A DNA stretch of 63,996 nt, the filler included, from Guillardia theta CCMP2712 (Eukaryota; Protista; Cryptophyta): the NCBI RefSeq assembly GCF_000315625.1. It is 8 parts of 8 records of this genome, joined end to end, with 100 filler letters (N's around TTAATTAATTAA, not from the genome) between each part and the next. Parts side by side here need not be neighbours in the genome. Positions count along the whole stretch, not along the records: positions 17,059 to 44,570 come from NW_005434653.1; 7 more parts are not named here. The stretch is one strand, 5' to 3'. Positions 17,059 through 43,903 of the stretch are shown here, one piece after another. The stretch's first letter is position 1. Every line of letters starts with the position of its first letter. The position numbers and the translations under genes were made by a program. The notes under the pieces were generated by a model that saw only the letters and a program-made list of their open reading frames with translations, did not search any database and was not told the origin of the DNA.

Positions 17059-18068
17059 TTTGCTCGGCTCCATTGAGGCTGTTCTGCACGGCCTGCAGTT
17101 TGACGAGCTACAGTGACGCCTCCTTCTCAAATTCTCCTCCTCCTCCTCCTCCTCCTCCTCCTCCTCCTCTTCATCTCTCTTCCTCCTCCTCTTCATCTCT
17201 CCTCCTCCTCCTCTCCACCTTGACGTTTGACCCCCTCCAGGGCTGTCAACCAGTACCTCGGACCCCTCGTCTCCTTCAGCTTCCTCTTCATCTGCCTCTT
17301 CTTCATGCTTAACACCTTCCTTGCGGTCTGACCTCGCCGACAACCCGCTTTCTCCTGCTCACCTGCCTCCCCAGCTCATCATGAAGAGCTATCAGGAGGT
17401 GTCCAAGATCAAGGACGAAGACTCGCTGTCCAAGGAGTTTGCAAAGGTTCTCCTGCTTGCCGCGTCACTCGACTCCCTCACAGCCCGAGCTTTAGGGCAT
17501 CTTTCCGTTCTTGAACTCAATTTCTGCAAGGCTCAAGGGGCTAGCCAAGAAAAACAAAGTCAATGACGGTGAGGCTGGAGGCAGCACGGCCGAGCTAGTG
17601 ACAGCACGGCAGAAAACTCCAAGGATCCCAAGGACAGCACAGGGACGAAAGACAAGAAGCAAGCATGGCCGGAGAACGACGGGAAGGACCAGCAGGCACA
17701 ACAGTCGACCTTACCACCGTCAAACGCTTCCAAACCCTCCACGGCACAGGGGAAGCCTGACCCAAAGCTTCTGCTTACGAGACAGAGGACCATGTACCGA
17801 AGGTAGCAGGACGGCGCGCATGTCCCCGCGCGATGAGCTCACGATAATAATCAGGGAGGACGATCTGGTCGAAGTTCCTTTGGAGGCTCTACAGCAACTC
17901 ACTGTGTCCCTGAACGATCTCCAGGGGAAGGTAGCTGATCTCAGTCGTTCTTCTTCCTCTCTCGTCTCCTCCTCGTTCCTCCTCCTCGCTCATCTTCTCG
18001 ATCAGGTCAAGAGCCTTTCGGATCGTGTCAGGACCGCTGAATGTGCCTTTCTTGGGAAGAAGATCTGA
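17059..18068 (+). CDS. Hypothetical protein, 5'-truncated, short C-terminal coiled coil
   Basis: Exon-like segments flanked by AG/GT (LIMKSYQEVSKIKDEDSLSKEFAK; EVPLEALQQLTVSLNDLQGK|VKSLSDRVRTAECAFLGKKI*); no recognisable domain. Confidence 0.45.
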
Positions 18069-18983
18069 AGTCTGCAATGTGCCACTCTCCTGCTGCTGCT
18101 GCTGCTGCTCTTCCCTCCTCCCTCCTCCTTCTCCCACTCGTGTTCCTCCTCCTCTTCACTCGCCTCCCTTGTATGTCCTGTACGTAATGATTTTCGGCAT
18201 TTTCGCTTGGCGAACTCTTTTTGAAAAATATCTGTATATTAAAACTTGATTTCAACATTTCAAATTTTACCCCAATTGTTACCGGAGGGGCCATAAAACT
18301 AAGGCATGGCAGGAAGCGGATATTGAAGTGAACGAGAGGAGCGAGGACAAGGGAGGAGAGGAGAGAAGGTAGCAGGGAGAAGAGAGGATAAGACAGGACA
18401 GGACAGGAGAGGAGAAGAGAGGATAAGACAGGAGAGGTGAGGAGAGGAGAGGAGAGGAGAGAGGAAGGAGGAGAGGATTGAGCGAAGATGGAGGGAAGGG
18501 GGGGGGGGGTTGCGGTGACGGGTACGGAGGCGAGGGGCATACCNNNNNNNNNNNNNNNNNNNNNNNNNNNNNNNNNNNNNNNNNNNNNNNNNNNNNNNNN
18601 NNNNNNNNNNNNNNNNNNNNNNNNNNNNNNNNNNNNNNNNNNNNNNNNNNNNNNNNNNNNNNNNNNNNNNNNNNNNNNNNNNNNNNNNNNNNNNNNNNNN
18701 NNNNNNNNNNNNNNNNNNNNNNNNNNNNNNNNNNNNNNNNNNNNNNNNNNNNNNNNNNNNNNNNNNNNNNNNNNNNNNNNNNNNNNNNNNNNNNNNNNNN
18801 NNNNNNNNNNNNNNNNNNNNNNNNNNNNNNNNNNNNNNNNNNNNNNNNNNNNNNNNNNNNNNNNNNNNNNNNNNNNNNNNNNNNNNNNNNNNNNNNNNNN
18901 NNNNNNNNNNNNNNNNNNNNNNNNNNNNNNNNNNNNNNNNNNNNNNNNNNNNGCTCCTCCTCCTCCTCCTCCTCCTCCTTACA

Positions 18984-21610
<2,627 letters not shown>

Positions 21611-21729: not shown

Positions 21730-24188
21730 GTGAACGCAGACTGGCAAGGAGATTTGAAATGTTCTCCTCCTGCTCTACTACCACATCCTCCCCTCTCCTA
21801 GTCGTTGCAATAGAAGAAAGAAGGATATCGGACTTTACGACTCTCCAGCTCGCCGCCCCCTCCTCCTTCTCTCAACCTCCTCCTCCCTTCTTCCTCTTCG
21901 GTCGCTTCTCTTCTGCATCCTCCTCTCGTACAGCACATCCTCGATCGTGTTGAGCATGTCGATACCTGCGGTCTCAGCCGTCACACGCCATCTCCTCTCA
22001 ACTCGCCATCATCTTCCTGCTCCACTTCCTCTCCCTGCTCCTGCTCCTGCCCGCCTCTCCCCTTCTCCTCCTCCTCTCCCCCGTCCTCTACCATCACATG
22101 CTTCTCCTTCATCCGCCTCCTCACTCACTCGCTTCATTCTGCTTCGCATCATCCGCATGCCCGAGACGATCTGAAAAGAAATCAGTCGCAGGGAGCGGAA
22201 GAAGACGCAGGTGAAGGTCTAGAAGAAGGGTGGGATGGAGGCAGCAGGAGAAAGCAAGGAAAGAGGGGGAAGAACAAGGCCTAAGACAGCGCAGGAATGG
22301 CGATGGTGGAAGTCAGGTGGCAATTTTGCATAGAACTCTGGAGGGGGAGAACAAGGAGTAGATCAAGGAGACTGTGGAGAAGGAGGAGGAGGATGAGGAA
22401 GAGGAGGAGGAGGAGGAGGAGGAGGAGGAGGAGGTGGTGGTGGTGGTGGTGGTGGTGGAGGAGGAGAAGGACCTGTCAGGATTTTCTCGAGTCTTTCGAG
22501 TCGATGCCTGTTAGATGCTCGCGGGTCCCTTTGATAATCTCTCACTGCTCGTTCCATGTCCATGAGCTGCAAATCCGATGTCAGAATCCATCCATCCTCC
22601 TCCTCCCTCTCCTCCCTCCTCCTCCTTCTCTGCACACCTGCAGGCCATGGCGCAGCTCTGACGCCTGTCTGCTGGACATGTCGGCTACTCTTCCCCAGCT
22701 CTTCTCCCCACTCAGCTCCTCTTCCTCCTTGCCAAACGCGCTTGCTTCTTCCGTCTCTGCCGTAGCTGCGCTCTCCCATCTCGAGGCCACGTTGCTGTGC
22801 TTTATCGCGTCCTCCTTCACTCTCCTGGCCTGTTCGAGCACATTCTGCACTTGCCTTGACTGAGCTGAGACTATCCTCCGCTCCTCCTCCTCTGCCTTCC
22901 TTCCCACCTGAACCGCACGCTGTTGCGACGCCTCAAGGCCAGAAAGCTTGTGAATCTCTTTGCTCTGAACTTTCGACAACACGGAACTTTTCTTCTCTTC
23001 CTCCTCATACGTCTTGATCTTCATCTTCGCGAGCTTCAGCCTCTCCTTCACTCGCTCCTCCGCCTGCTCTGCCAGCTTCAGGTTCAGCTCTGCAGCCTTC
23101 TCTTCCTCAGGCCCCACGTCGATGTCTTTCCTCAGCTGCTGCAGCCGCGTCTTCGCAGCATGCAGCTTGCTCTGGTACTCCAGCTTCCGGTACTTGTCCA
23201 CCTCCCCGAGCTTGTGTTGCAGAGCCGCTGCATGCAGCATGACCTGTCGTTGCTTCTTCTCGAACAGAACCTCCTCCTCCAGCACTTTGATCTGCCGCTT
23301 CATCGTCTTCATCTCGTCCAACAAGTCCACCTCCTTTTCTCGATTGCACTTCGATCCCTTCGCTCCTCCGCTTCCGTCCGAAGGCTTCTTGCATCCCATC
23401 TCGACAAGCTGTTTCTGGATCTTGTCGACCTGCCCCTGCAGCTTGAGGGCCTCTTCCTGCTTGTCCTTTGCTCTCTTGTCCGCCTTCGTCGCTCCTCGCT
23501 TCGCCTTCTCCTCCTCCTTCACCTCCTCCTCCTGCTTGCTCGAGAATCGATTCACAAGTTTGCTGAGATCAGCGAGAGCTCCTGTCTTCTTCGAAGCCCC
23601 CTCGTCCTCCTTGAGGTTTCTCTTCAGCTTTTCCACGTGCTGTTCCAGCTTCTTCACCGACCCCTTCATCACGCTCAGGGACGCTGACAATTCATTCGCC
23701 CCGTCCTGCTCGCTCCTCGCTTTCTTCTTCGCCCTCCTCTCCTCCGCCATGAGCGACTCCAGCCTGTCTTCATGCAGATTCACCACCTGGGATGTCGCCA
23801 GCAGCGATCTCTCCAGCCGATTGGCAACATTCTCGATCCTTCTCGCCTTCTCATCGTCCTCCTCCAGCGTCTCTGCCCGGTCACGAGCGATCTTGACCAA
23901 CTTCGCATGCAGCCTGTCGTCGTTGCCCTCAAGCAGCTTCTCCTCGTCAGCTTTCTTAGCGAAGTCTCTTGCTCGATGCAGCGCCTGGTTCATCATCAGC
24001 CTCGCATGATTGTATGTCTTCTCGTCGCTGTTCTGGTAGAGCTTCTGCAGCAGAGAGACGCTGCTCCGATGAGCGCGCCTGTGCGAGGATGTACGAAGAA
24101 CACTGAAGTGGAACAGAGCGAAAGAGAGGAAGATAACGAAGCAAACGAGGAAGGGAACGAAAGAGAGGCGAGGGCTCCGGGAGGTCAT
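21730..24188 (-). CDS. Signal-anchored long coiled-coil (E/K-rich) protein
   Basis: A >500-codon first exon with an N-terminal hydrophobic segment (FVPFLVCFVIFLSFALFHF) then heptad-rich sequence; further small exons downstream; 3' end approximate. Confidence 0.7.
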
Positions 24189-24526: not shown

Positions 24527-24601
<75 letters not shown>

Positions 24602-24602
24602 G
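24527..24602. repeat. (CTGT)n microsatellite
   Basis: Directly visible perfect run. Confidence 0.95.
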
Positions 24603-26363
24603 CCTCTCTCTCATCGCTCCCTCGCTCCAAGCGCCTCCCTGTGCTGTACCAGCTCATTATGACTCACCCCAGCTCGCTGCCCCTCATCCCCTTCATCTTC
24701 ACCCGGGCCGGGCCCTGGGCCGGCCCGGGCCCGGCAACCGGAACCGTGCCCGGCGGCGGTGCCGCTCAGCTGCAACCGCCGGCCACGGCCGCGAGTCACC
24801 ACGACCGCGAGTCACCGTTCAACTAACGGCCGGGCGGCCTCAGGCTCAGGCATGCCAGTTCGGAAAGTTGACCTTCAATTGCCCCAGCGGCCCAGCCTCG
24901 GAGTCACTGAGGTGGCTTGACAGACTGAGAGAAAAGCCTGACAGCGAGAACCAACCCTCATGAGGAGTCCTGCCGACTGCTGTCCCGCCGGGAGTCCCCC
25001 GCATTCAACTAGTAACCGAGTCAGCCAATACCGGCCGGGCGTAGGGCAGTCGGATCGGACGTACCCTAGTACCTTCGCGCAAGACCGTCGTGGCATTCCC
25101 CCGCGCTAGTGATCGGACGGCCCGGTCAGACCGTACTCCGGCCGGGCGCCGCCCGGTCCGATCGCCGCCCGGACTCACTGGCCCGGTGCCATGCGGGCAG
25201 TGCGGCCCGTGACGGTGATCAGTGAGGCCGCCCGGGCCCCGGGCCGCGTGTGACAAGTCGTTACAAATCGCGTAACCGCCACCCACAGTAAAATCGCATC
25301 TGTGATTGGCGGGGCGTAGGGGGTGGTACATACCAGGGGGTGGTTTCATGGGGTAGGTAGTGCAACGGCTACTCAGTTGTCTGTACCCTCCCCCCCCCGC
25401 CCCTTTTGGAGTGACCCCTACTATGACATGAAAGTACCCGGTATTTGGGAATAGTTCTACCCACCCCCTGTGGTCCGAAAGACAACAACCGTGACCGCTG
25501 CTACTACCCCACGAAGACAAGTACCCCCGTCACATCTATTCGTTCTTTTTACTACCATCCATAGGCAGGGGTGCTGGCTGCCATCCCCATCTCACCACCC
25601 CTACAAACCGGAGCACATTCCCAAAGTACCCCATAAATTACATACTTTTACACCGGTACCTTTGGACCCTACCCGTATAATTGCGTGTATCTGCAATCCC
25701 TGAAGTACTAGTCACTTGCCATGCACGGTTGAATTCCCCGGAACCTCCTCGTCCACTCCCGCTTGTCGTTCTCCTCCTCCTCCCTCTCCCCATCCCTCTC
25801 CCTCTCCGTCTCCCTCTCCGTCTCCTCCTCCTCCTCCTCCTCCTCCTCCTCCTCCCTCTCCCTTTCCTACCCCTTATCCTTATCCCTCTCCCTCTCCCTC
25901 TCCCTCTCCCTCTCCCTCTCCCTCTCCCTCTCCCTCTCTCGCTCTCTCTCCTCTAATCTCATCCACCTTTACTCCACCTTCCGACCATCTTCATCGCCCC
26001 TCGGATGCTGAGTTTCTTTCACTGACAAACTTTCTGTCCAATTGCAGAGCCCTTGGCAGAGTATCACTTTGAAAATCTTTCCATCTCGTCATCTCGATAG
26101 CGATCTAGTTTGAATATGCAAGAGAGGTTGTGGAGATAGGAAGGATCCCCGTATCAGTTTGGATATCTCTCTTGGCATTTGACTCAAAGCATCACGAAGT
26201 TGCCTTCCTCTCATCCCGACGGCCTTATAGTATCTCGATCATAATCGTCCATCATTTTCCTTTGATCTTCAACCTCGACTGATTTTCAAACAAAGCTGCA
26301 ATCTCGCTCCTCTGTCCTCGGCTCTTGTTTGCTAGCGCCAGCTTCTTGGTTTCCTTGACGCTC

Positions 26364-28705: not shown

Positions 28706-30240
28706 ATGAACTTGTCTACAGGTACAATACAACCCCAAGGTCAACCTTCCCTCACTTCTGACGCCTCCACCTCTCCAGCAGGAGCATGCCTTAGGTTCCT
28801 CCTCCTCCTCCTCCTCCTCTCCCCCGCCTTGAGTGTATACGTCGGCCCGGCCCTCAAGTCGCAATGGCAGGATCCATACAGAGGAAGAGACCACGTGTTT
28901 CACATGCAGCTGGAAGTCAGCGGGATCGAGTTAGACCACCTCCTCCTCTCCTCCAACTACACTCAGATGGACCTCTACGTCCTCTTCTACGTCCCTTCCA
29001 ACCCGCTCGCTAAGGTTCCGCCTCCCCTGCCACCATCTCTCACCTCTCTCATACGCCTCCTCAGACCCTCCTCCCCGTCTGGAAGCAAGTCTGGGAGCGC
29101 TTCGCTCCCATCCCGCGCGTCGACGTGGCTGTTGCCTTGCTGCCCTCCACCAGCTCTGAAAGCTGCTGCAGGTCCTCCAGGTCGATTGCAGCGGAGTGGG
29201 AGGAATATCGTGCAAGGACCGCAACGTGGTCGACATCCCTTCGATCCAGAGGTTCCCTGCAGGCTCGCCCCACGGGTTCTTCTACAGGGGCAGGTAAAGA
29301 GGGCAAACAGGGTCCCTCCTCCTTCATGCCCGGGCTGACCGGGGGACGTCAGTGTTGATCTCTTTGCGCTGGAGGAATGGATTATAGATGCCTCCAACCT
29401 TGAAAAAGTCACTCCCTGCTCCCTCCTCTCTCCTCCTCTCCACTCTCTCCTCCTCTCTCCACCTCTCTCCTCCTCTCTTTTCTCTTAGCCCTCTCCTCTC
29501 TCTCCTCTCCTCTCCTCTCCTCTCCTCTCCTCTCCTCTCCTCTCCTCTCCTCTGAGAACAGCCGGCAGGAGATGAAGCCTCGAGACGTCCAGCCAGTGTC
29601 TGGTTGCGTTGCCTTCCGACAGACGTCAGGGTGTGACCCGGAGGGAGGGCGCGAGCCTCACAAAGACAAGCCGTGCGACCACGAGGTGACGACGATGGCG
29701 GGGGCCATGCACGAGTCTCATCCTCCTCCTCCCCGGCAGATCCCCAGCGGCATGTCAGGATACTGCGAGTGCGGGGAAGGCGACCATAGGATGAAAGTCC
29801 GCTGCCGGCACCAGCCCTTCCGCTGCGATGAAGTATGTGTCAAGGTGCCGGGCTGCGTGGCATGGCGGCAGGTGGAGGAGGAAGAGGAAAAGGGAGGAGT
29901 GTGTTGACGGCAAGATCAGACTGGAAGTTGTGTACCCGATGGCCCCAGAGAGCCGCAGAATGACAAGCATTGCCGTCGCGCCCTCATGGCCGGGGTGTCT
30001 GGATACTGCGAATGCGAAGGAGGGAGGAAGGTTGCGTTGGTGAGAGAATAATACTGATCATGGGGATGATGATGTTGGGGATGAAGATGATGATAATAAT
30101 TATGGAGACTAATTATGGATAATGCTTTGTGATGGTGCGGTGCGTTTCCAATAAGTTCGTTTATTCTTCAGATGGCATGCTCTACAAGGACCATAGGAAC
30201 ATTCACTTGCGAAGAGAAGTGTAATGAACCGATTCAATGA
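28706..30240 (+). CDS. Secreted protein: signal peptide + redox-inactive thioredoxin-like domain + two Cys-rich CVxWRQT..CxPxGxREP repeats
   Basis: Spliced MNLSTAGACLRFLLLLLLLSPALS; YVLFYVPSNPLAK|..LLPVWKQV..|VLQVDC..SCKDRNVVDIPSIQRF; CVAFRQTSGCDPEGGREPHKDKPC..SGYCEC and CVAWRQ|TGSCVPDGPREPQNDKHC..SGYCEC..FTCEEKC. Confidence 0.75.
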
Positions 30241-30256: not shown

Positions 30257-31759
30257 TTATGAGGAGGCAGCGGGAGCTCCTCCGCTCGTGGCGGCTTGAG
30301 CGGCCTTCTCAGCCTCGATGCTCGACACAAAAGCATCCACCTCTTCATCGCTCCAGATCTTGAGAGGCTCGTTCATCCTCATGGTCGCGATCTCAATATT
30401 CCTTCCCCCGCTCTCAACCACCTCCAACAGCGCCTTCACCGCCAGCTTCTTGCACTCCTCGTCCGATGCGGCGAGCTCATCCGTATAATTCTTTTCCAGG
30501 TATTCGCGCACAGTTTTAGAATTCTTGCCAATGGCATTCGCTTTCCAAGCGTAGAAGGTCCCAGACGGTTCAGTTTGGTAGAGTGAGAGGCCATTTCGAT
30601 CGTATCCACAAATAAGAGTTGAGATCCCAAAAGGACGCATACCTCCGCTCTGCGTGTACTTCTGCTGAATTCCCGCTAGATAACGAGTGATGTACGCCAC
30701 TGAGACCGGATCTTCCATGGTGAGCTTGAAGCTCTGGCACTCCACCCTTGTGCGGTTCACCAGAACTCTTGCATCGGCAGTGAGTCCCGCGAAAGCCAAG
30801 CAGACATGGTCGTCCAATACATGGATCTTTCTTACAGTACGAGGTTCCTGCAGGTTTTGCCGAATCATGACAATTCATAGCAGATAAACCCAACCCACCT
30901 GAAGCTTCGCGGTGGATTTCTTCTCCACCCCAACTACAATAATGTTATCCCCTGTGAAACATTGTCAGACAACTGCGCATCACCCATCAAGATAACAGAC
31001 AATCATCGACTCACCCTTGACTGCCACGGCAGTCGTGCCTCGTCGCACAGCCTCGAGCGCATATTCAACCTGAACGATTCAGTCACGTCGGTTCAGCAGC
31101 ATCTTGTTAAAAGAAATGATGATTTTCTTGATGATGATATTGAACTCTTATAACGAGACCCGAACAAGAAAATTAAGTTGCACGCCATGAGCACTTGTGA
31201 AAAACACTGAACTATCCTCAGAAAACACTGGAATACCACCCGCACTGAGCTAAAATTCCATGTGTAATGAGGTGAAGTTTGAGAATCAGGATAGCAAGCA
31301 GTGAAGTTTGAGAATCAGGATGGCAAGCAATGATTATTGCTGATCACGCGAAACCAAATCAATCGGGGATTCTTCTTGTGTACGATTCAGCCAAGAAGAT
31401 TTTATGGAGACACAGCGAACAAGAAAGAACAGGCATTGTCCTCCTCATGTAGAATGGATACGGCCAACCACAACCATAAAATCCAACCTCCAACTTATGG
31501 CATACTTGATCCTTTCATCAATTTTGATCATACAAGCAACCTCAACGGTAACCTTCCATGCATCACTATTCCTCTCTTCCAGCTATCGCTTCCTTTTTCT
31601 TCCCTCTCCTCTCCCTATGTTACTTCATCATCTCTCAACTCTGTCACTTCACAGTCTCTCTGAATCTCTGTCAGTGCACTGCACGCTGATCGAATGTACC
31701 TGGAACAAGTGTCCATCGGGTGAGAACACCGTAATCGCGCGATCATAGCGGCTCGACAT
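30257..31759 (-). CDS. PSMA7: 20S proteasome subunit alpha type-7 (alpha4), 4 exons
   Basis: [20 protein letters not shown]|[19 protein letters not shown]|[17 protein letters not shown]|...[34 protein letters not shown]. Confidence 0.97.
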
Positions 31760-32272
31760 GGCGGGAGGACACCGTGTCCTCTCACGAGGCCCTCATCCCC
31801 ACGTCAACCCCTGCGTTGACTGAGACACCGAGCCTGCAGCCGAGCCTGCCTGGAGCCTGCCTCCTCAGCACGGTCACTGAGTGCGGGCCGGCCGCGCCCG
31901 GGGGGCCGGGCCGGTGGACGGTGAGTCCGTCAGACCGGGTCACATCCCCCGGCCGCGCCCGGGCGGCGGCCCGGCGCTGCCCATGACGGACCACCCACCC
32001 CATTCAACCCCCAAACATTATTGGGGTTGAATGGGGTGCCGCCGGCTCAGTGGTCAGTCCGATCGTTGCCACGGTCCGATCTGACGGACCGTCCGACGGT
32101 CACCCGGTACAGTACGGTACCGGCGTCTCAGTAGTCCTGGGCCGGGGGGTGCAGTAGCGGCAGGCCCTCCTGCTTCTAGGAGGGAGGGGTGGGGGCCGGG
32201 GGTAGAGCTTGGGAGTACCTACCGGTAGATGTCTTTCAATAGTGACTCTTCGGACGCGCCTCCTCATCCACC

Positions 32273-34057
32273 ATGCAGGCGAGGCAGCCGCTGCTTCCTT
32301 CGCGCAATGCCGCCCGCCGCCCTGGTGTCATGGCATTTGTTCCGGCTGCTCTTGCAGCGTGTGCTGCGCTCCTGCTCCTTGCGGTGTCTTTGACAGCCTT
32401 CAACGCAGAAAGTCAGCCCGACGAGAGGCTGCAGGAAAATCCCCCCACGTTGTACTATGTTCCTGTCAAGACCTCCAGGCCATGGAAGAAGCAGCAACAG
32501 CTCGTGTACTACTACCTACCTCAGTCTTCGCATGGGCTCAGCATGCTCAATGGCAGCGCAGCAGGCGGAAACTCCTCTGCCGGAGGTCAGAACTCAAGCA
32601 GCGCCAGCGGCGGCTCAAATGATTTCGTCTGCTCCGTCGCGAACATTAAGGCCCTGCACGCGGCAGTGCAGCCCAAGTGGGACGCCTGCAAGTCTAATCC
32701 CAACTACGAGGAGCCAAACAAGGGCGCGAAGAGAAGGTGGGCGATGCCTGGCAGGGTTGGCAGGTGACCTGCGTGCAGGTTGTTGGAGTGGGTCTGGGAA
32801 CCAAAGGCAGGCGAGAGAATGACAGCCAAACCGAGGTACTCTCCAGATCACTACAGACTTGCAATCAAGGCCGATAGGAGCAGGTATCGAGCCGATTGTG
32901 CGTTGAAGGAGCAAGACTGATGTTTTTCTGTAGGCGACATGCCGCAAAGCAATCCGATACCTCATCAGAACTTGGCAGGTACTCATGGTGAACACTTGTT
33001 TTAAGGTTGTTGAAATGCTATTACCAGCTACATTAGTTTGTTCTCAAGCTTGGCTGGCAACTCAAGCAACTCCTCTGCTTCGCAGGGCTCTGCTAACGCA
33101 GGCTCTGCAAGTATGTCATCTTGCGAGAAGAATGCACTCTCGGGAGCTTGCGAGAAGTTGGCCGCGTGCAAAGATCCTGTGTGCTTCAGCTATTACAACG
33201 AACCTGAGATCGAGCAGCTCTGTGGAATGTGCAGCATGGGAAGTCAAGCTTGGTTTGGTTGCTTCGCTGAAGACTCCAAGGTGACGTTGAAGTCCAGGAG
33301 GGTTGCAAACTGATTGTACGCCACCAGGTTTCTGTAGAGGGCAAGGGAAGTGTCGCGATCAATGAGATTCAGATCGGAGACATGGTTCTCTCTGCTGATG
33401 CCTCTGGAGCTCCCCAGCACTCTCGAGTCATCTTCAAGCATGACCACAAGGATGTCTCGTCTGTCATCAGCATCTCCTATGAAGACAGGACTCTTCGCCT
33501 CACGCCTACTCACTTGATCCCCAAGTATTCGGACAAGTGTGGAGACAGGTGGACGACTGGTTGAACTTGCAGATTTCTTCACTGACACTTGAGACAGTTT
33601 CTGCCATCTTGCCAAGAATGTTCCTGCCAGCTCAATCCAAGCTGGAGACAGGATCTACGTGCACTCTGGTGAAGGATTCCAGGCTAAGGCATGAATTACA
33701 GCATTGTTCTTCATTCCATGACGAACTTTTTTGCAGATTGTCTCTGCTGTCTCCAAGTCAGCTGCCAAAGTGAGGTACCTGCTCACGGAGAACGACAGGA
33801 TCGTAGTGGATGGAATTTTGGCCAGCGTTTTTTCCACGGCTGCGGAGAAGTTTGAGACGCTGCCGTTCCATCTGCTCGACCGATTCCTCCCAGGAGTGCT
33901 TCAGAGCAAAGCTGTCGCAGCAACCTTGGAAACTATTCTTGAGTCGCCAATCCTTCAAGGCTTCGAAACTATTGTGAACTCTCTCTCTACTTTGGCTGTT
34001 CCTCGCAACGCCAACAGCAACGCTCTATTGGCCGCTACTCCTTTTAAGTCCTTGTAG
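32273..34057 (+). CDS. Hog-domain (Hint + SRR-like) autoprocessing protein with Cys-rich ectodomain, paralogue 1
   Basis: WFG/CFAEDSK (Cys codon 33260-33262), IQIGDMVLS, RVIFKHDH, LRLTPTHLI, IQAGDRIYV, LLTENDRIVVDGILASVFS, LPFHLL; N-terminal signal anchor. Confidence 0.88.
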
Positions 34058-34250
34058 ATGTTCTTCTGCCTATTATTGCCATGACGACATGTATGGCAAA
34101 CGCGGACAAGTTTCAATCGTGTGGCAATAAACTTGGATAGATGACGGAGTCTTCGAAGTTGATCAGACACGAAGTTTAATACAGATGTGCTGAGTCATCC
34201 TCGTTCCTACTCTGAGGGGCTAACAAAGCTGAGAGACTTGCCTGAAGGAT

Positions 34251-36170
34251 TTACTGAGAGAGGTGGCTGACGTGAACGAGAGGGTTGCTCTTGGGGGCAG
34301 CCATAGAGGGCAAGTTAGCAACGGCGTTGAGGGCAAACTCGAAGTTTCTCAAAGCAGGAGATTCCAAGATGATCCTGAGGGAGGTAGCGACTGGGTCCCA
34401 CTGCAGCACGCCCTTGACCATCTTGTCGACAAGGCGGAATGGAAGAGTCTCAAGGGTCTTGGCGGCCGTTGAGTAGACAGAAGCCACAACCCCGTTGACA
34501 ACGATGCTGTCGTTCTCGGTGAGAACGTAGCGAACTAGTGAGATTCCTCTCGACACTGCCTGAACGGACTGATGACCAAAGTCAGGTTGCAAGACATGTG
34601 TCGATGTACATGTAGAACATACCACAACGTGGGATGCACGCTCCTTGGCAACGTAGATCTTGTCCCCAACCTTGACATTCTTTGCAGCAATGAGCTCGGC
34701 AGCATCACAGTACCTTGAGAGAGAGAGCAAGTCAGTGCACACAAGCCTCCAAGGCAACAACTGCTCACCTGTCACCGCAGGCCTCGGAGTGCATCGGAAC
34801 CATGTGCTCGGTGGTGAGCTCCATGGTGTCATGACCGTGAGAGATGCGGACGGTTGCGGAAACTTCCTTGTGATCGTGGACAAAGATGACACGGGACGAC
34901 ACGATCTTGCCCTCAGATGAAACCGACTGGACAGCATCTCCCACAGCCACCTCCTTCAGCAGCCTCGCGCTGCCGTCGGCCATGGACACGACAGAATCCT
35001 GAGCAAAGCAACCCCAGCCTGCAGCAGCCATGCCGCACATACCGCAAAGAGCCTCGATCTCAGGCTCGTTGTAGTAGCTGCTGCACACAGGGTTGGCACA
35101 GGAAGAGATCTTGGCACAGGCCTCGCCGACAGCCTGGATCTCGCACTCAGAGAGAGATGGTCCGCTAGGTGCCGCGGTAGCATTTGCGCTGGTGGCATTG
35201 TCGGCCGCAAGAGAAGGGAAGGAGCGGTGCAAAGCAGCAGCTCTAGTCTGAGTCTTGGCCCTCATAGCAATGACCTTGTGGTACATCCTACTTGAGCATG
35301 AGCAGTTGTTGCAGGAGTCTTCTCTCCCATCACTCACCTTCGCGCTCCCTCCTCCAGGTGCATTCTGTAGTAGCTAGGGCGATGTTGAGGCTTGACAGTC
35401 TTCTGCTCTCCTTCCTTGGGCTCCCACACCCACTCCAACAATCTGCGACTCTAGTCAATATTCTTATCCATCGAATAGACCATAAAAACCTCAGGATATC
35501 GATCTACAACTGAGACCATCCTGATCACAGCACAAGTTGCAAGAAAGATTACATGGCAAGAAGTTCAAACATATAATTGAACTCAAAACAATCCCAGCAA
35601 AAACAAAAACAACACGAGCAAAGATTAAGCGAAGACCCTAAGTCGAGCACGGCTAACCAGATGAAATTACCTTCGCTTGGCATCCTTGTTCGGAACAACG
35701 TAGTTGGGGTTACTCTTGCACTTGTCCCACTTCGGCTGAGCCTCAGCATGCAGAGCCATGATGTTCTGCACTGTGCATACGAAGCTGGGTGCAGCAGCAG
35801 CAGTGCTGTTGCCACTAGTGGCATTGTCCCCTGCAAGCATCTGCTGCGGCATGTAGTAGTAGACAACAGGCTGCTGCTGAACGGCCTTGGCAACACGAGA
35901 CTGAGCACCTCCTACAAACCTCGATCCTGCCGGGATAGCGTTGACGGGAACGTAGTAGAGGGTTGGCGCCTGTCCTCCCTGCGCCTGCATGGCCTGAGCC
36001 TGTGCTAACGAGATTCCCACACCTGAGGGTGGAGACCTGACTGCCGTGTACACCAGAAGGACTGCAAGGGAAGAAGCCAAGATGGCTGCTGCTGCTGGCA
36101 GGATTCTGTACGAAGTCTGTCGTGTCGATCCGCGCGCCATAAGCGGCAGCTGCTCCAGCGTCGCTGCCAT
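34251..36170 (-). CDS. Hog-domain (Hint + SRR-like) autoprocessing protein with Cys-rich ectodomain, paralogue 2
   Basis: GWG/CFAQDSVV (Cys codon 35008-35010), VAVGDAVQS, RVIFVHDH, MELTTEHMV, VKVGDKIYV, VLTENDSIVVNGVVASVYS, LPFRLV; collinear with paralogue 1. Confidence 0.88.
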
Positions 36171-37149
36171 GCCGTCGAAGAGCCGTTCGATCCCGGCGTC
36201 CCTTCGACTCACAGACCCCCACCCCTACTGGTATTGACCCACAGCAACTGTGTACCCCTCATCCCTAATATACACCCCTCCAATATCCTTAAATCAACTC
36301 TTCTTTCACCCCGTGCTTGATGAGCGACATAATATCCACCCCACCCTCTGGCTGCATCCAACCTCCAAGGGGAGGTGTCATGCATAAGGGTAGTAAGGGG
36401 GGGGTTGATTACGCATCCGAACAGGGGTGGCAGCCCCTCCAAGAGTGACGGCACTTCTTGTTTATCTAGAAAAGGTGGGTGGGGTCATGGAGCAATGAAA
36501 GCGATAGCGGAGAGAAGGGGGTAGTCTGAGAGAGAGATTGAGGGGTGGGTGGTGGTACGATCAAGGTCAATAATGACTGAGTAGTCACTGGAGTCTCCCC
36601 CGAGCCGCCGCAGTGAGCCGGGCCGGCGCCCGGCCCGGCCCGGCTGCCGCCCGTCTGGCAGAGTCTCAGTTATTCAAGTTAGACGGGCAGTAATCACGGA
36701 ATCATGAACTTCGGACCGTACTACTGTGACGGTAGTTAAAGATCAGTACGAGGACAATCAGGTAGTAGTACACGGTTGATCAATAGTACCGTAGTACTGA
36801 GCACATCCGATGACTGTGCCAGTCCCCCGGGTCTATCGTACACAAAACGGTACGGTATCATGGGCCGATCATTAGGCTGCGACGGTATCAGAATTGGTTT
36901 ACTTTGGACTCCATTATGCAAAAGATGACCGACCCCTTCCGCACTCCATCAAGAGAGAGAATGCTGAAGGCACCAAGGTGTCAGGCATTCGACACTTGAA
37001 GCATGAAAACGGGAAGGAAACTTACGCCATGGGAGGCAGAAATCTTTCCTGGCATGCTATTCTAAGTCTGCGTTCATCCAACGGGGCATGCACGTTACAG
37101 GTTTACAGAAGCGAGGCACGTTTCACCTCAATTTCTTCTTGAGTTGAGC

Positions 37150-43016: not shown

Positions 43017-43578
43017 ATGTCCGATGTAACGGAACGGCTTCCGACAGCGATGGACTCCGAGACGCGAGACGCGAGACGATGGAGAGAGAGGGAGAGGGAG
43101 AGAGAGAAGGAGATGGGCGGGGGGGGGGGGGAGGAGGGCCGGGGGTGGAGGAGGAGGAGTGGGAGGAGAGGAGAGGAGAGGAGAGGAGAGGAGAGGAGAG
43201 GAGAGGAGAGGAGAGGAGAGGAGAGGAGAGGAGAGGAGAGGAGAAGAGAGGAGAGGAGAAGAGGAGCTGACTCGGACACTGTAACAGGGCTTGCGCTGGA
43301 CGGGACGGAGATCATGGGCATGACGCCGCTGGGAGCGGCAGCTCAGTCGAGGGCGCTTCAGATCGGGGATCTCATCGAGGAGGTGGATGGAGAGCGAGTC
43401 GACGATGACAACGTATTATTTTTCACCTTAAAGCAGCTACTGACACCCCAGCTGGCCCTTGAGCTGGAGCCTCACATGTCAACACCCCTGACGAAGTAGT
43501 ACCGGCAGATCCTGGACCGCCTACGGGGCTGCGACGTCGTGGGGTCACCGATCATGCTCACTGTAGGACTAGAAGAGA

Positions 43579-43662
<84 letters not shown>

Positions 43663-43903
43663 AGGGAGATGAGTTAGAGGAGGACGAGCACGAGGTCGAA
43701 GACGAGGAGGAGGAGCGAGTAGGGGTGAAGGAGGAGGCAGGTGATACGCATGCGGCGGTACGTGACGATTGATGGGCAGGTGAGAAGGCCGATGGACATG
43801 ACGGTCAGGTAAAGAGAAATTAGTCAAGTCCCGCGGGTTTATGCTGACAGCTGAGAAATTGGACAGAAGCGTCACGCTGGTCCGTCAGGCAGCGATCATG
43901 TGA
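43017..43903 (+). CDS. Small PDZ-domain protein (start uncertain)
   Basis: GLALDGTEIMGMTPLGAAAQSRALQIGDLIEEVDGERVDDDN|ILDRLRGCDVVGSPIMLT..|..SVTLVR. Confidence 0.7.

Follow-up and report, generated by a model that had tools for sequence, protein, structure and literature searches.

Background

In Hog proteins, an N-terminal 'cargo' domain is joined through a Gly|Cys junction to an autoprocessing Hog domain, comprising a Hint domain and an adduct-recognition region. Those of protists carry secreted N-termini unrelated to the Hedge domain of Hedgehog (Buerglin 2008, BMC Genomics 9:127, PMC2362128). One of them, crGt Hog1 from Guillardia theta, an alga belonging to the cryptophytes, was built from the expressed sequence tags (ESTs) EG727196, EG725553, EG718685, EG725977 and EG721300 in the same study. 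Here we describe the nuclear locus found at positions 32273-36170 of a stretch of G. theta CCMP2712 DNA, 63,996 nucleotides long and referred to as the window, in which a complete gene for this protein (gene A) converges with a paralogue (gene B, GUITHDRAFT_136638). We consider it probable, at roughly 0.85, that both encode autoprocessing proteins of a cryptophyte-specific Hog family, gene A being Hog1 and gene B an old paralogue of it.

Results

A convergent pair of paralogous genes

Short introns break up the locus, such that lists of open reading frames (ORFs) return it only as fragments. When both strands were translated in three frames, two convergent paralogous coding series were apparent, gene A on the + strand and gene B on the - strand, with stop codons 193 nt apart and 45.7% identity over 451 amino acids. 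A preliminary description of the locus had proposed just such a tail-to-tail pair of Hog-like paralogues, and all of the motifs it quoted are present: WFG|CF and GWG|CF, LTPTH and LTTEH, RVIFKHDH and RVIFVHDH, and ETLPF[HR]L. Local TBLASTN searches recovered all blocks of one gene in the other, including an LLEWVWEPK block lying inside the apparent intron 1. The conserved sequence within this 'intron 1' of both genes was considered as an intronic element, a possibility rejected because RNA contigs show it to be a real exon. The same contigs give gene A seven exons in place of the four large ORFs originally envisaged, those at 32779-32883 and 32934-32978 having been missed.

Residues 88-499 of gene A are letter for letter the 412-residue partial crGt Hog1 sequence (Buerglin 2008, supplementary file 5), the two small exons included, so the published EST assembly independently confirms the gene A model. 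Gene B corresponds to XP_005835496.1 (GUITHDRAFT_136638), a 507 amino acid protein that maps to the locus without mismatch and is held in UniProt as L1JJ41, a 'Hint domain-containing protein'. The novelty implied by the preliminary description does not survive these identities: gene A is the published G. theta Hog1, gene B was already annotated as a Hint protein, and the Hog pair is not new.

A recent tandem duplication was rejected as the origin of the pair, on the grounds of the 45.7% identity between the genes and the presence of a separate orthologue of each in Hanusia phi (72.5% identity for gene A and 81-84% for gene B, in the EukProt protein set). On the same grounds the duplication appears to be old, with both copies retained, and judged by these comparisons the convergent pair is one that has been kept under selection.

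Hint fold and catalytic residues of the Hog domain

Residues 289-457 of gene B match the Pfam Hint family (PF01079) with 77.8 bits (E 1.1e-21; cut-off 29.7), the match reaching profile position 183 of 213, and four homologues score 48.7-81.2 bits; gene A, scanned against Pfam exon by exon and hence as separate pieces only, has a best Hint piece at E 0.02. A profile made from 27 non-redundant Hog regions retrieves Hedgehog chains only from the PDB (6TYY at 1.7e-16, 6TD6 at 2.7e-15 and 1AT0 at 4.5e-15) and matches human SHH at 1.1e-09. For residues 294-507 of gene B, AlphaFold gives a model with a predicted local distance difference test score (pLDDT) of 90.4 and a predicted template modelling score of 0.82, which consists of a beta-rich core extending to about residue 140 of the model, then helices at 147-159, 167-177 and 180-193. 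The top matches to this model in a Foldseek search of the PDB were 6TYY (template modelling (TM) score by target 0.86, E 5e-11) and 1AT0 (0.85, E 4e-10), with a root-mean-square deviation of 2.1 Å, and the next best were BIL domains and inteins. As a matter of sequence and modelled structure, the Hint match of the Hog pair is far beyond chance, which bears out the membership of this family previously suggested for both genes.

The Gly|Cys junction lies within WFG|CFA in gene A (WFG|CF at residues 280-284, junction 282|283) and GWG|CFA in gene B (GWG|CF at residues 292-296, junction 294|295). Among the 27 relatives, which are only 35-56% identical, the nucleophile Cys is found in all and the Gly before it in 26. 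The TxxH motif, which aligns with TPAH of Hedgehog, is LTPTH in gene A (347-351) and LTTEH in gene B (359-363), its Thr (T69) being retained in 26/27 and its His (H72) in 27/27. Upstream of it, RVIFKHDH in gene A and RVIFVHDH in gene B contain an H-x-H motif of which both histidines (H339 and H341 of gene B) are present in every relative, the position between them being D in 19, E in seven and S in one. This middle residue (D328 of gene A, D340 of gene B) aligns without gaps to the general base, D46/D303, of wild-type Drosophila Hh and to the equivalent Asp of human SHH, as the preliminary description had it. A family-specific C-G-x-x-Y-C loop follows TxxH, with its two Cys conserved in 25/27 and 24/27 relatives respectively. 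Such a near-invariant catalytic set across divergent relatives is, at the level of sequence, the signature of selection on catalysis.

The terminal His-Asn of inteins is absent from both genes, as had been noted beforehand; instead ASV[FY]ST is followed by a helical tail and then the stop codon. This tail of roughly 70 residues is as conserved as the Hint core, with E442, P445, F446, G455 and P473 invariant, and is modelled with high confidence as three helices packed on the Hint domain. In the 27-sequence profile its start, ETLPFRLL, aligns with FAPFRLAHALL of SHH. The tail had been likened to the Hedgehog sterol-recognition region (SRR), a resemblance that holds for this first helix only, as beyond it no similarity to the SRR could be detected.

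The cargo domain

All full-length relatives share a single cargo architecture. It starts with the only strongly hydrophobic segment of the protein, 19-25 residues long and preceded by basic residues (maximum Kyte-Doolittle value over 19 residues 2.2-2.7), followed by the Tyr-rich motifs P-x-Y-Y-V-P and P-V-V-Y-Y-Y-x-P and clusters of N-x-S/T sequons, of which there are 4-6 at conserved linker positions. Next comes the block F-x-C-T-x-x-N-I-x-A-L...W-D-x-C-K...Y-x-x-P-N-x-x-A-[KR]-R-R-L-L-G-W-V-W-E-P, a second sequon-rich linker, and a block of six Cys, C-x8-C-x5-C-x4-C-x12-C-x2-C, that ends at the Gly|Cys junction. Across 42 sequences, the eight Cys of the cargo are invariant or nearly so. As the hydrophobic stretch comprises 20-25 residues after basic residues, it is probably a type II signal anchor. 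In gene A it is followed by LTA|F, resembling the signal-peptide cleavage motif of secondary-plastid proteins; plastid targeting was rejected as a feature of the family, the motif being absent from gene B and the other relatives.

No Pfam family, HH_signal included, matches the N-terminal halves of the gene B protein and four homologues at E <= 0.1, and when the cargo was scanned by exon, the sole match was to Acanthaporin (E 0.09), which is not a credible relative. The cargo model is of moderate quality (pLDDT 67.7) and places four helices and a hairpin about a disordered linker that is predicted to be glycosylated. It had no credible relative in the PDB by Foldseek (best E 1.2); the best TM score in the ESM Atlas was 0.34 when searched by features and structure and 0.30 in the Atlas fold search; and VIA-align comparison with 48,161 chains yielded at best generic helical repeats at Z 6.3, under the noise level for helical models. 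A secretory hydrophobic segment leading into a cargo with no match to a Pfam family or known fold, as anticipated, is hence seen in both genes. We regard this cargo as an unclassified, lineage-specific domain, although with a model of this quality 'no known fold' is not proven. Buerglin (2008) had reported much the same state of affairs for protist Hog proteins in general.

Gene structure and expression

The coding sequence (CDS) of gene A, at 32273-34057 on the + strand, comprises seven exons that join into an open 1500-nt frame encoding 499 amino acids. Exon 1 (32273..32736) contains the start codon, the hydrophobic anchor (residues 19-43 by hydropathy, about 32327-32401), PTLYYVP, LVYYYLP, three N-x-S/T sequons, Cys120, Cys139 and the KRR site. 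Two small exons follow: the 105-nt exon 2 (32779..32883), which begins LLEWVWEPKAGER and carries LLEWVWEPK, a motif kept in gene B and the whole family, is defined by spliced RNA contigs, and the 45-nt exon 3 (32934..32978) by these and the published EST assembly. Exon 4 (33028..33280) encodes the N-glycosylation linker, the six-Cys module, Gly282|Cys283 (33257-33262) and the opening stretch of the Hint domain; exon 5 (33328..33548) encodes Hint strands with H327-D328-H329 (33439-33447) and T348..H351 (33502-33513). Exon 6 (33598..33688) is separated by a GC-AG intron (33689-33736) from exon 7 (33737..34057), in which the Hint domain ends (ASVFST) and the helical tail with ETLPFHLL and the stop codon follow.

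Four public runs were placed on 31800-36600 for transcript evidence. Spliced contigs with all six joints of gene A are present in X8 (1604 nt) and X14 (1549 nt), both presumed to be RNA, and also in X6; the introns are 42, 50, 49, 47, 49 and 48 nt long, five with GT..AG and one with GC..AG ends. Contig depths on the gene are high (152, 872 and 7031), and raw RNA-Seq reads of run X21 concentrate on the last exon, some of them bearing poly(A) tails (34144 and 34148). The RNA contigs place the poly(A) site at about 34145-34148, and the transcript, counted to this site from where the longest of them begins at its 5' end, spans 32257..34148 (+). Gene A is strongly expressed, correctly spliced and polyadenylated. 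One X6 contig (33747-34569; 823 nt, mean depth 766) continues without a break from the last exon of gene A past the poly(A) site and into the last exon of gene B, and could represent read-through, an overlap between the convergent transcripts or library DNA.

Gene B, with its CDS on the - strand at 36170-34251, has five exons in an intact frame with canonical GT-AG introns. Exon 1 (35671..36170) includes the start codon, the anchor (residues 23-41), PTLYYVP, VVYYYMP, Cys132, Cys151 and the KRR site. In the deposited model, exon 2 (35338..35442) begins LLEWVWEPKEGEQ and is homologous to the small exon 2 of gene A. The linker, six-Cys module, Gly294|Cys295 (35013-35008) and N-terminal half of the Hint domain, with H339-D340-H341 and T360..H363, are in exon 3 (34769..35287); exon 4 (34623..34713) and exon 5 (34251..34559) are likewise given by the deposited model, the latter covering the last part of the Hint domain (ASVYST), the helical tail with ETLPFRLV and the stop codon. 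This model removes 34622..34560 (63 nt) to read ...SHVV|AVSRG. Use of an AG nine bases upstream would yield SHVV|SVQAVSRG, in agreement with the Hanusia phi orthologue (...SHVVTVKAVSRA), which suggests that the true start of exon 5 may be 34568. Two X6 contigs, of which one ends at 34569 and the other begins at 34623, meet exactly the two edges of the 54-nt intron that this acceptor would give, and their ends may reflect a branch due to splicing in the assembly graph.

Distribution of the family

Gene B exon 3, which covers the Cys-rich module and the N-terminal half of the Hint domain, was searched against 1.84 billion representative proteins, giving 200 proteins at E <= 1e-3 and seven at E <= 1e-30; a 190 amino acid match shares a 90% cluster with XP_005835496.1. 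Every named relative is a cryptophyte: G. theta, Hanusia phi with two proteins, Cryptomonas paramecium or Baffinella frigidus. The others are environmental or MMETSP sequences. The G. theta genome assembly searched (87,145,349 bases in 669 contigs, with the locus within C21:322597-350220) has at least five Hog loci, each encoding the cargo and then the Hog domain: besides genes A and B, these are GUITHDRAFT_138502 (G000:C32:230000-234500), crGt Hog2 (G000:C4:379500-384000) and a divergent paralogue (G000:C54:343500-348000). This last copy has G-C-L-A in place of G-C-F-A, M-A-H in place of H-D-H and S-N-N-H in place of TxxH.

Some database entries of the family merit comment. Many proteins (P0013, P0016, P0021, P0022, P0030, P0033 and others) end a few residues past G-C-F-A and lack the Hint domain; since they read into the phase-0 intron that, in gene A, follows CFAEDSK (33281-33327), they are truncated gene calls and not cargo-only paralogues. 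The Hanusia phi orthologue of gene A (P0223, from EukProt) contains two additional stretches in frame, VIPDVLECVELTSC and ARCSISRLLLV, located where gene A has introns 4 and 6, suggesting short introns retained in the transcript model. A 253 amino acid partial protein labelled 'MAG: Promethearchaeia archaeon' (MGB1591733.1, P0180), in the 90% cluster of P0004, belongs to this otherwise cryptophyte-only family, and most likely derives from a cryptophyte contig binned into an Asgard archaeal metagenome-assembled genome.

Other features of the window

An ORF at 30257-30868 (-) matches the Pfam Proteasome subunit family (PF00227, E 6.4e-48) and is an exon of a neighbouring housekeeping gene unrelated to the Hog pair. 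Microsatellites with purine and pyrimidine strands are numerous (17134-17213, 18353-18477, 19962-20121, 20704-20816, 22376-22471, 24527-24602, 25780-25951, 29419-29553, 43148-43263 and 43575-43665) and include (CTC)n, (GAGGA)n, (CCT)n, (GGA)n, a perfect (TCTG)19, (CTCCCT)n and (GAGCAG)n. The composition profile shows strong GC and AT skews locally, which these repeats explain.

Discussion

Proposed autoprocessing and its alternatives

If these proteins are autoprocessed, the precursor would enter the endoplasmic reticulum by means of its N-terminal hydrophobic segment, the ectodomain becoming N-glycosylated and disulfide-bonded. Cys283 of gene A, or Cys295 of gene B, would attack the carbonyl of the preceding Gly in an N-to-S acyl shift, and a hydroxyl nucleophile held by the tail would resolve the thioester, freeing a Hog domain of roughly 215 residues and leaving the Cys-rich cargo with a modified C-terminal Gly. 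This nucleophile would most likely be a 3-beta-hydroxysterol, since a substrate of that kind is available in G. theta CCMP2712 in the form of brassicasterol and stigmasterol (PMC5793051, Table 5). Attachment of a sterol to the cargo, as opposed to water or another adduct, is a tentative prediction to which we give somewhat less than an even chance. The reaction would have to bypass the branched intermediate of animal Hedgehog because Cys143 is absent, and would proceed directly from the linear thioester.

Several points weigh against such a scheme. We know of no biochemical evidence of cleavage or of an adduct for any protist Hog protein, and an N-terminal anchor, if uncleaved, would leave the processed product tethered at both ends, which would be unusual. 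The Hedgehog Cys143 of motif J (SCYA) is replaced by Val in 25, Ile in one and Leu in one of the 27 relatives, with ASV[FY]ST standing for ASCYA; the Val in genes A and B had been pointed out in the preliminary description, and a replacement of this type in G. theta was already remarked by Buerglin in 2008 (PMC2362128). According to a 2025 report, autoprocessing of Hedgehog in mammalian cells depends on this Cys, which carries a branched thioester (PMC12054796), and given its absence the chemistry of the Hog pair cannot be assumed to be identical to that of Hedgehog. Motif K, part of the Hedgehog SRR, was likewise reported not to be conserved in the G. theta sequences (PMC2362128). The placement of the general base is also ambiguous by one residue, since HMMER alignment with the D46H mutant 6TYY shifts by one place, pairing H339 instead of D340. 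The D303H swap is reported to keep structure and activity while broadening sterol tolerance (PMC9163320), so either D340 or H339 could act as the general base. Lastly, there are the transcript data for gene B: its sampled words had a share of 0.00 in nine contig sets, presumed to be RNA and drawn from five studies, that all contain gene A, and in run X6 it is represented only by unspliced pieces of low depth (4-6) in which a 55-nt intron is retained.

The Hog domain might instead self-cleave only, with water or a non-lipid nucleophile resolving the thioester and the Hint domain serving for maturation or release in place of lipid attachment, an alternative that is doubtful yet has to be taken seriously. 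In its favour are the lack of Cys143 throughout the 27 relatives and the reported non-conservation of motif K in G. theta. We are also aware of no demonstrated adduct for any Hog protein other than Hedgehog, a point that rests in part on the wording 'adduct recognition region' for the C-terminal part of these proteins (PMC2362128). For plain hydrolysis, however, there would be no need of a tail of roughly 70 residues that is conserved like the Hint core, has five invariant residues, is modelled as packed on the Hint domain and has a first helix aligning with FAPFRL of SHH. It is highly improbable that the Hint domain is instead catalytically dead, acting as a binding or structural module within a precursor that stays intact; the loss of Cys143 and processing being so far without experimental evidence would fit, but the Cys, the Gly, the Thr and His of TxxH and the H-[DE]-H motif would hardly be expected to remain (nearly) invariant across relatives so divergent in sequence. 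The transcript evidence raises the further prospect that only gene A functions, gene B being a duplicate that is silent or in decay. While expression of gene B in G. theta is unproven, its intact frame, GT-AG introns and full set of catalytic residues, together with the conserved Hanusia phi orthologue and the age of a duplication in which both copies were retained, argue against decay and make this improbable.

We favour autoprocessing by both proteins, for which one specific form can be put forward. The family may represent natural Hedgehog-type sterol or lipid transferases that lack Cys143 and use the invariant His-Asp/Glu-His cluster, adding a phytosterol to an N-glycosylated, disulfide-rich helical domain, while a kexin-like cut at [KR]RR|LL[GE]WVWEP would free a lipid-anchored surface glycopeptide of roughly 130 residues from the membrane anchor. 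As a whole this combination is rather unlikely. If true, it would make Hog1 an abundant protein held at the surface of a unicellular alga by a sterol, and no protein from outside the animals would have been shown to be sterylated before it. A signalling role is unsupported, and the high level of Hog1 mRNA in a single-celled alga is at least as compatible with a protein that is abundant and either secreted or at the surface.

Comparison with known systems

Hog proteins with a non-Hedge cargo have been in the protist literature, gene A among them, since 2008, and the locus is no new kind of system. It does provide a practical entry to the question of whether non-animal Hog proteins are lipid-modified, with a well-expressed Hog1, a culturable alga and a sequenced genome, and its natural active site, with H-D-H and no Cys143, bears on the current debate over the Hedgehog mechanism.

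The Hint fold is common to inteins and BIL domains, such as Tetrahymena BUBL BIL2 (6Y75), at TM scores of 0.70-0.82. Unlike inteins, the Hog pair has neither a C-terminal His-Asn nor a downstream extein nucleophile, the protein ending once the helical tail is complete, which leaves no possibility of splicing or ligation. With the C-terminal domain of Hedgehog (1AT0, 6TYY, PF01079), the pair shares the Hint fold, the Gly|Cys junction, TxxH, an acidic residue at D46/D303 and a helical tail starting with PFRL. It differs in having no Hedge (HH_signal) domain and Val for Cys143, in the position of the acidic residue between two invariant His (H-D-H) and in the extra C-G-x-x-Y-C loop after TxxH. 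Nematode Warthog, Groundhog and Quahog and choanoflagellate Hoglet are also lineage-specific proteins in which a non-Hedge secretory cargo is joined via Gly|Cys to a Hog domain (PMC2362128). Their cargo domains are unrelated to that of cryptophytes. The latter was found with a Hog domain only, in five G. theta loci; nematodes have many cargo-only genes.

The closest described proteins are crGt Hog1 and crGt Hog2 (Buerglin 2008), the second being the paralogue on C4, and the same Hog classification applies to the present pair. That study had partial ESTs lacking the N-terminus and gene structure, and included neither gene B, nor the convergent pair, nor the cryptophyte-wide conservation of the upstream domain. 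What is new here is modest: a verified seven-exon model of Hog1 and its pairing with GUITHDRAFT_136638, along with the cargo architecture shared across cryptophytes and an active-site pattern that combines H-[DE]-H with the lack of Cys143.

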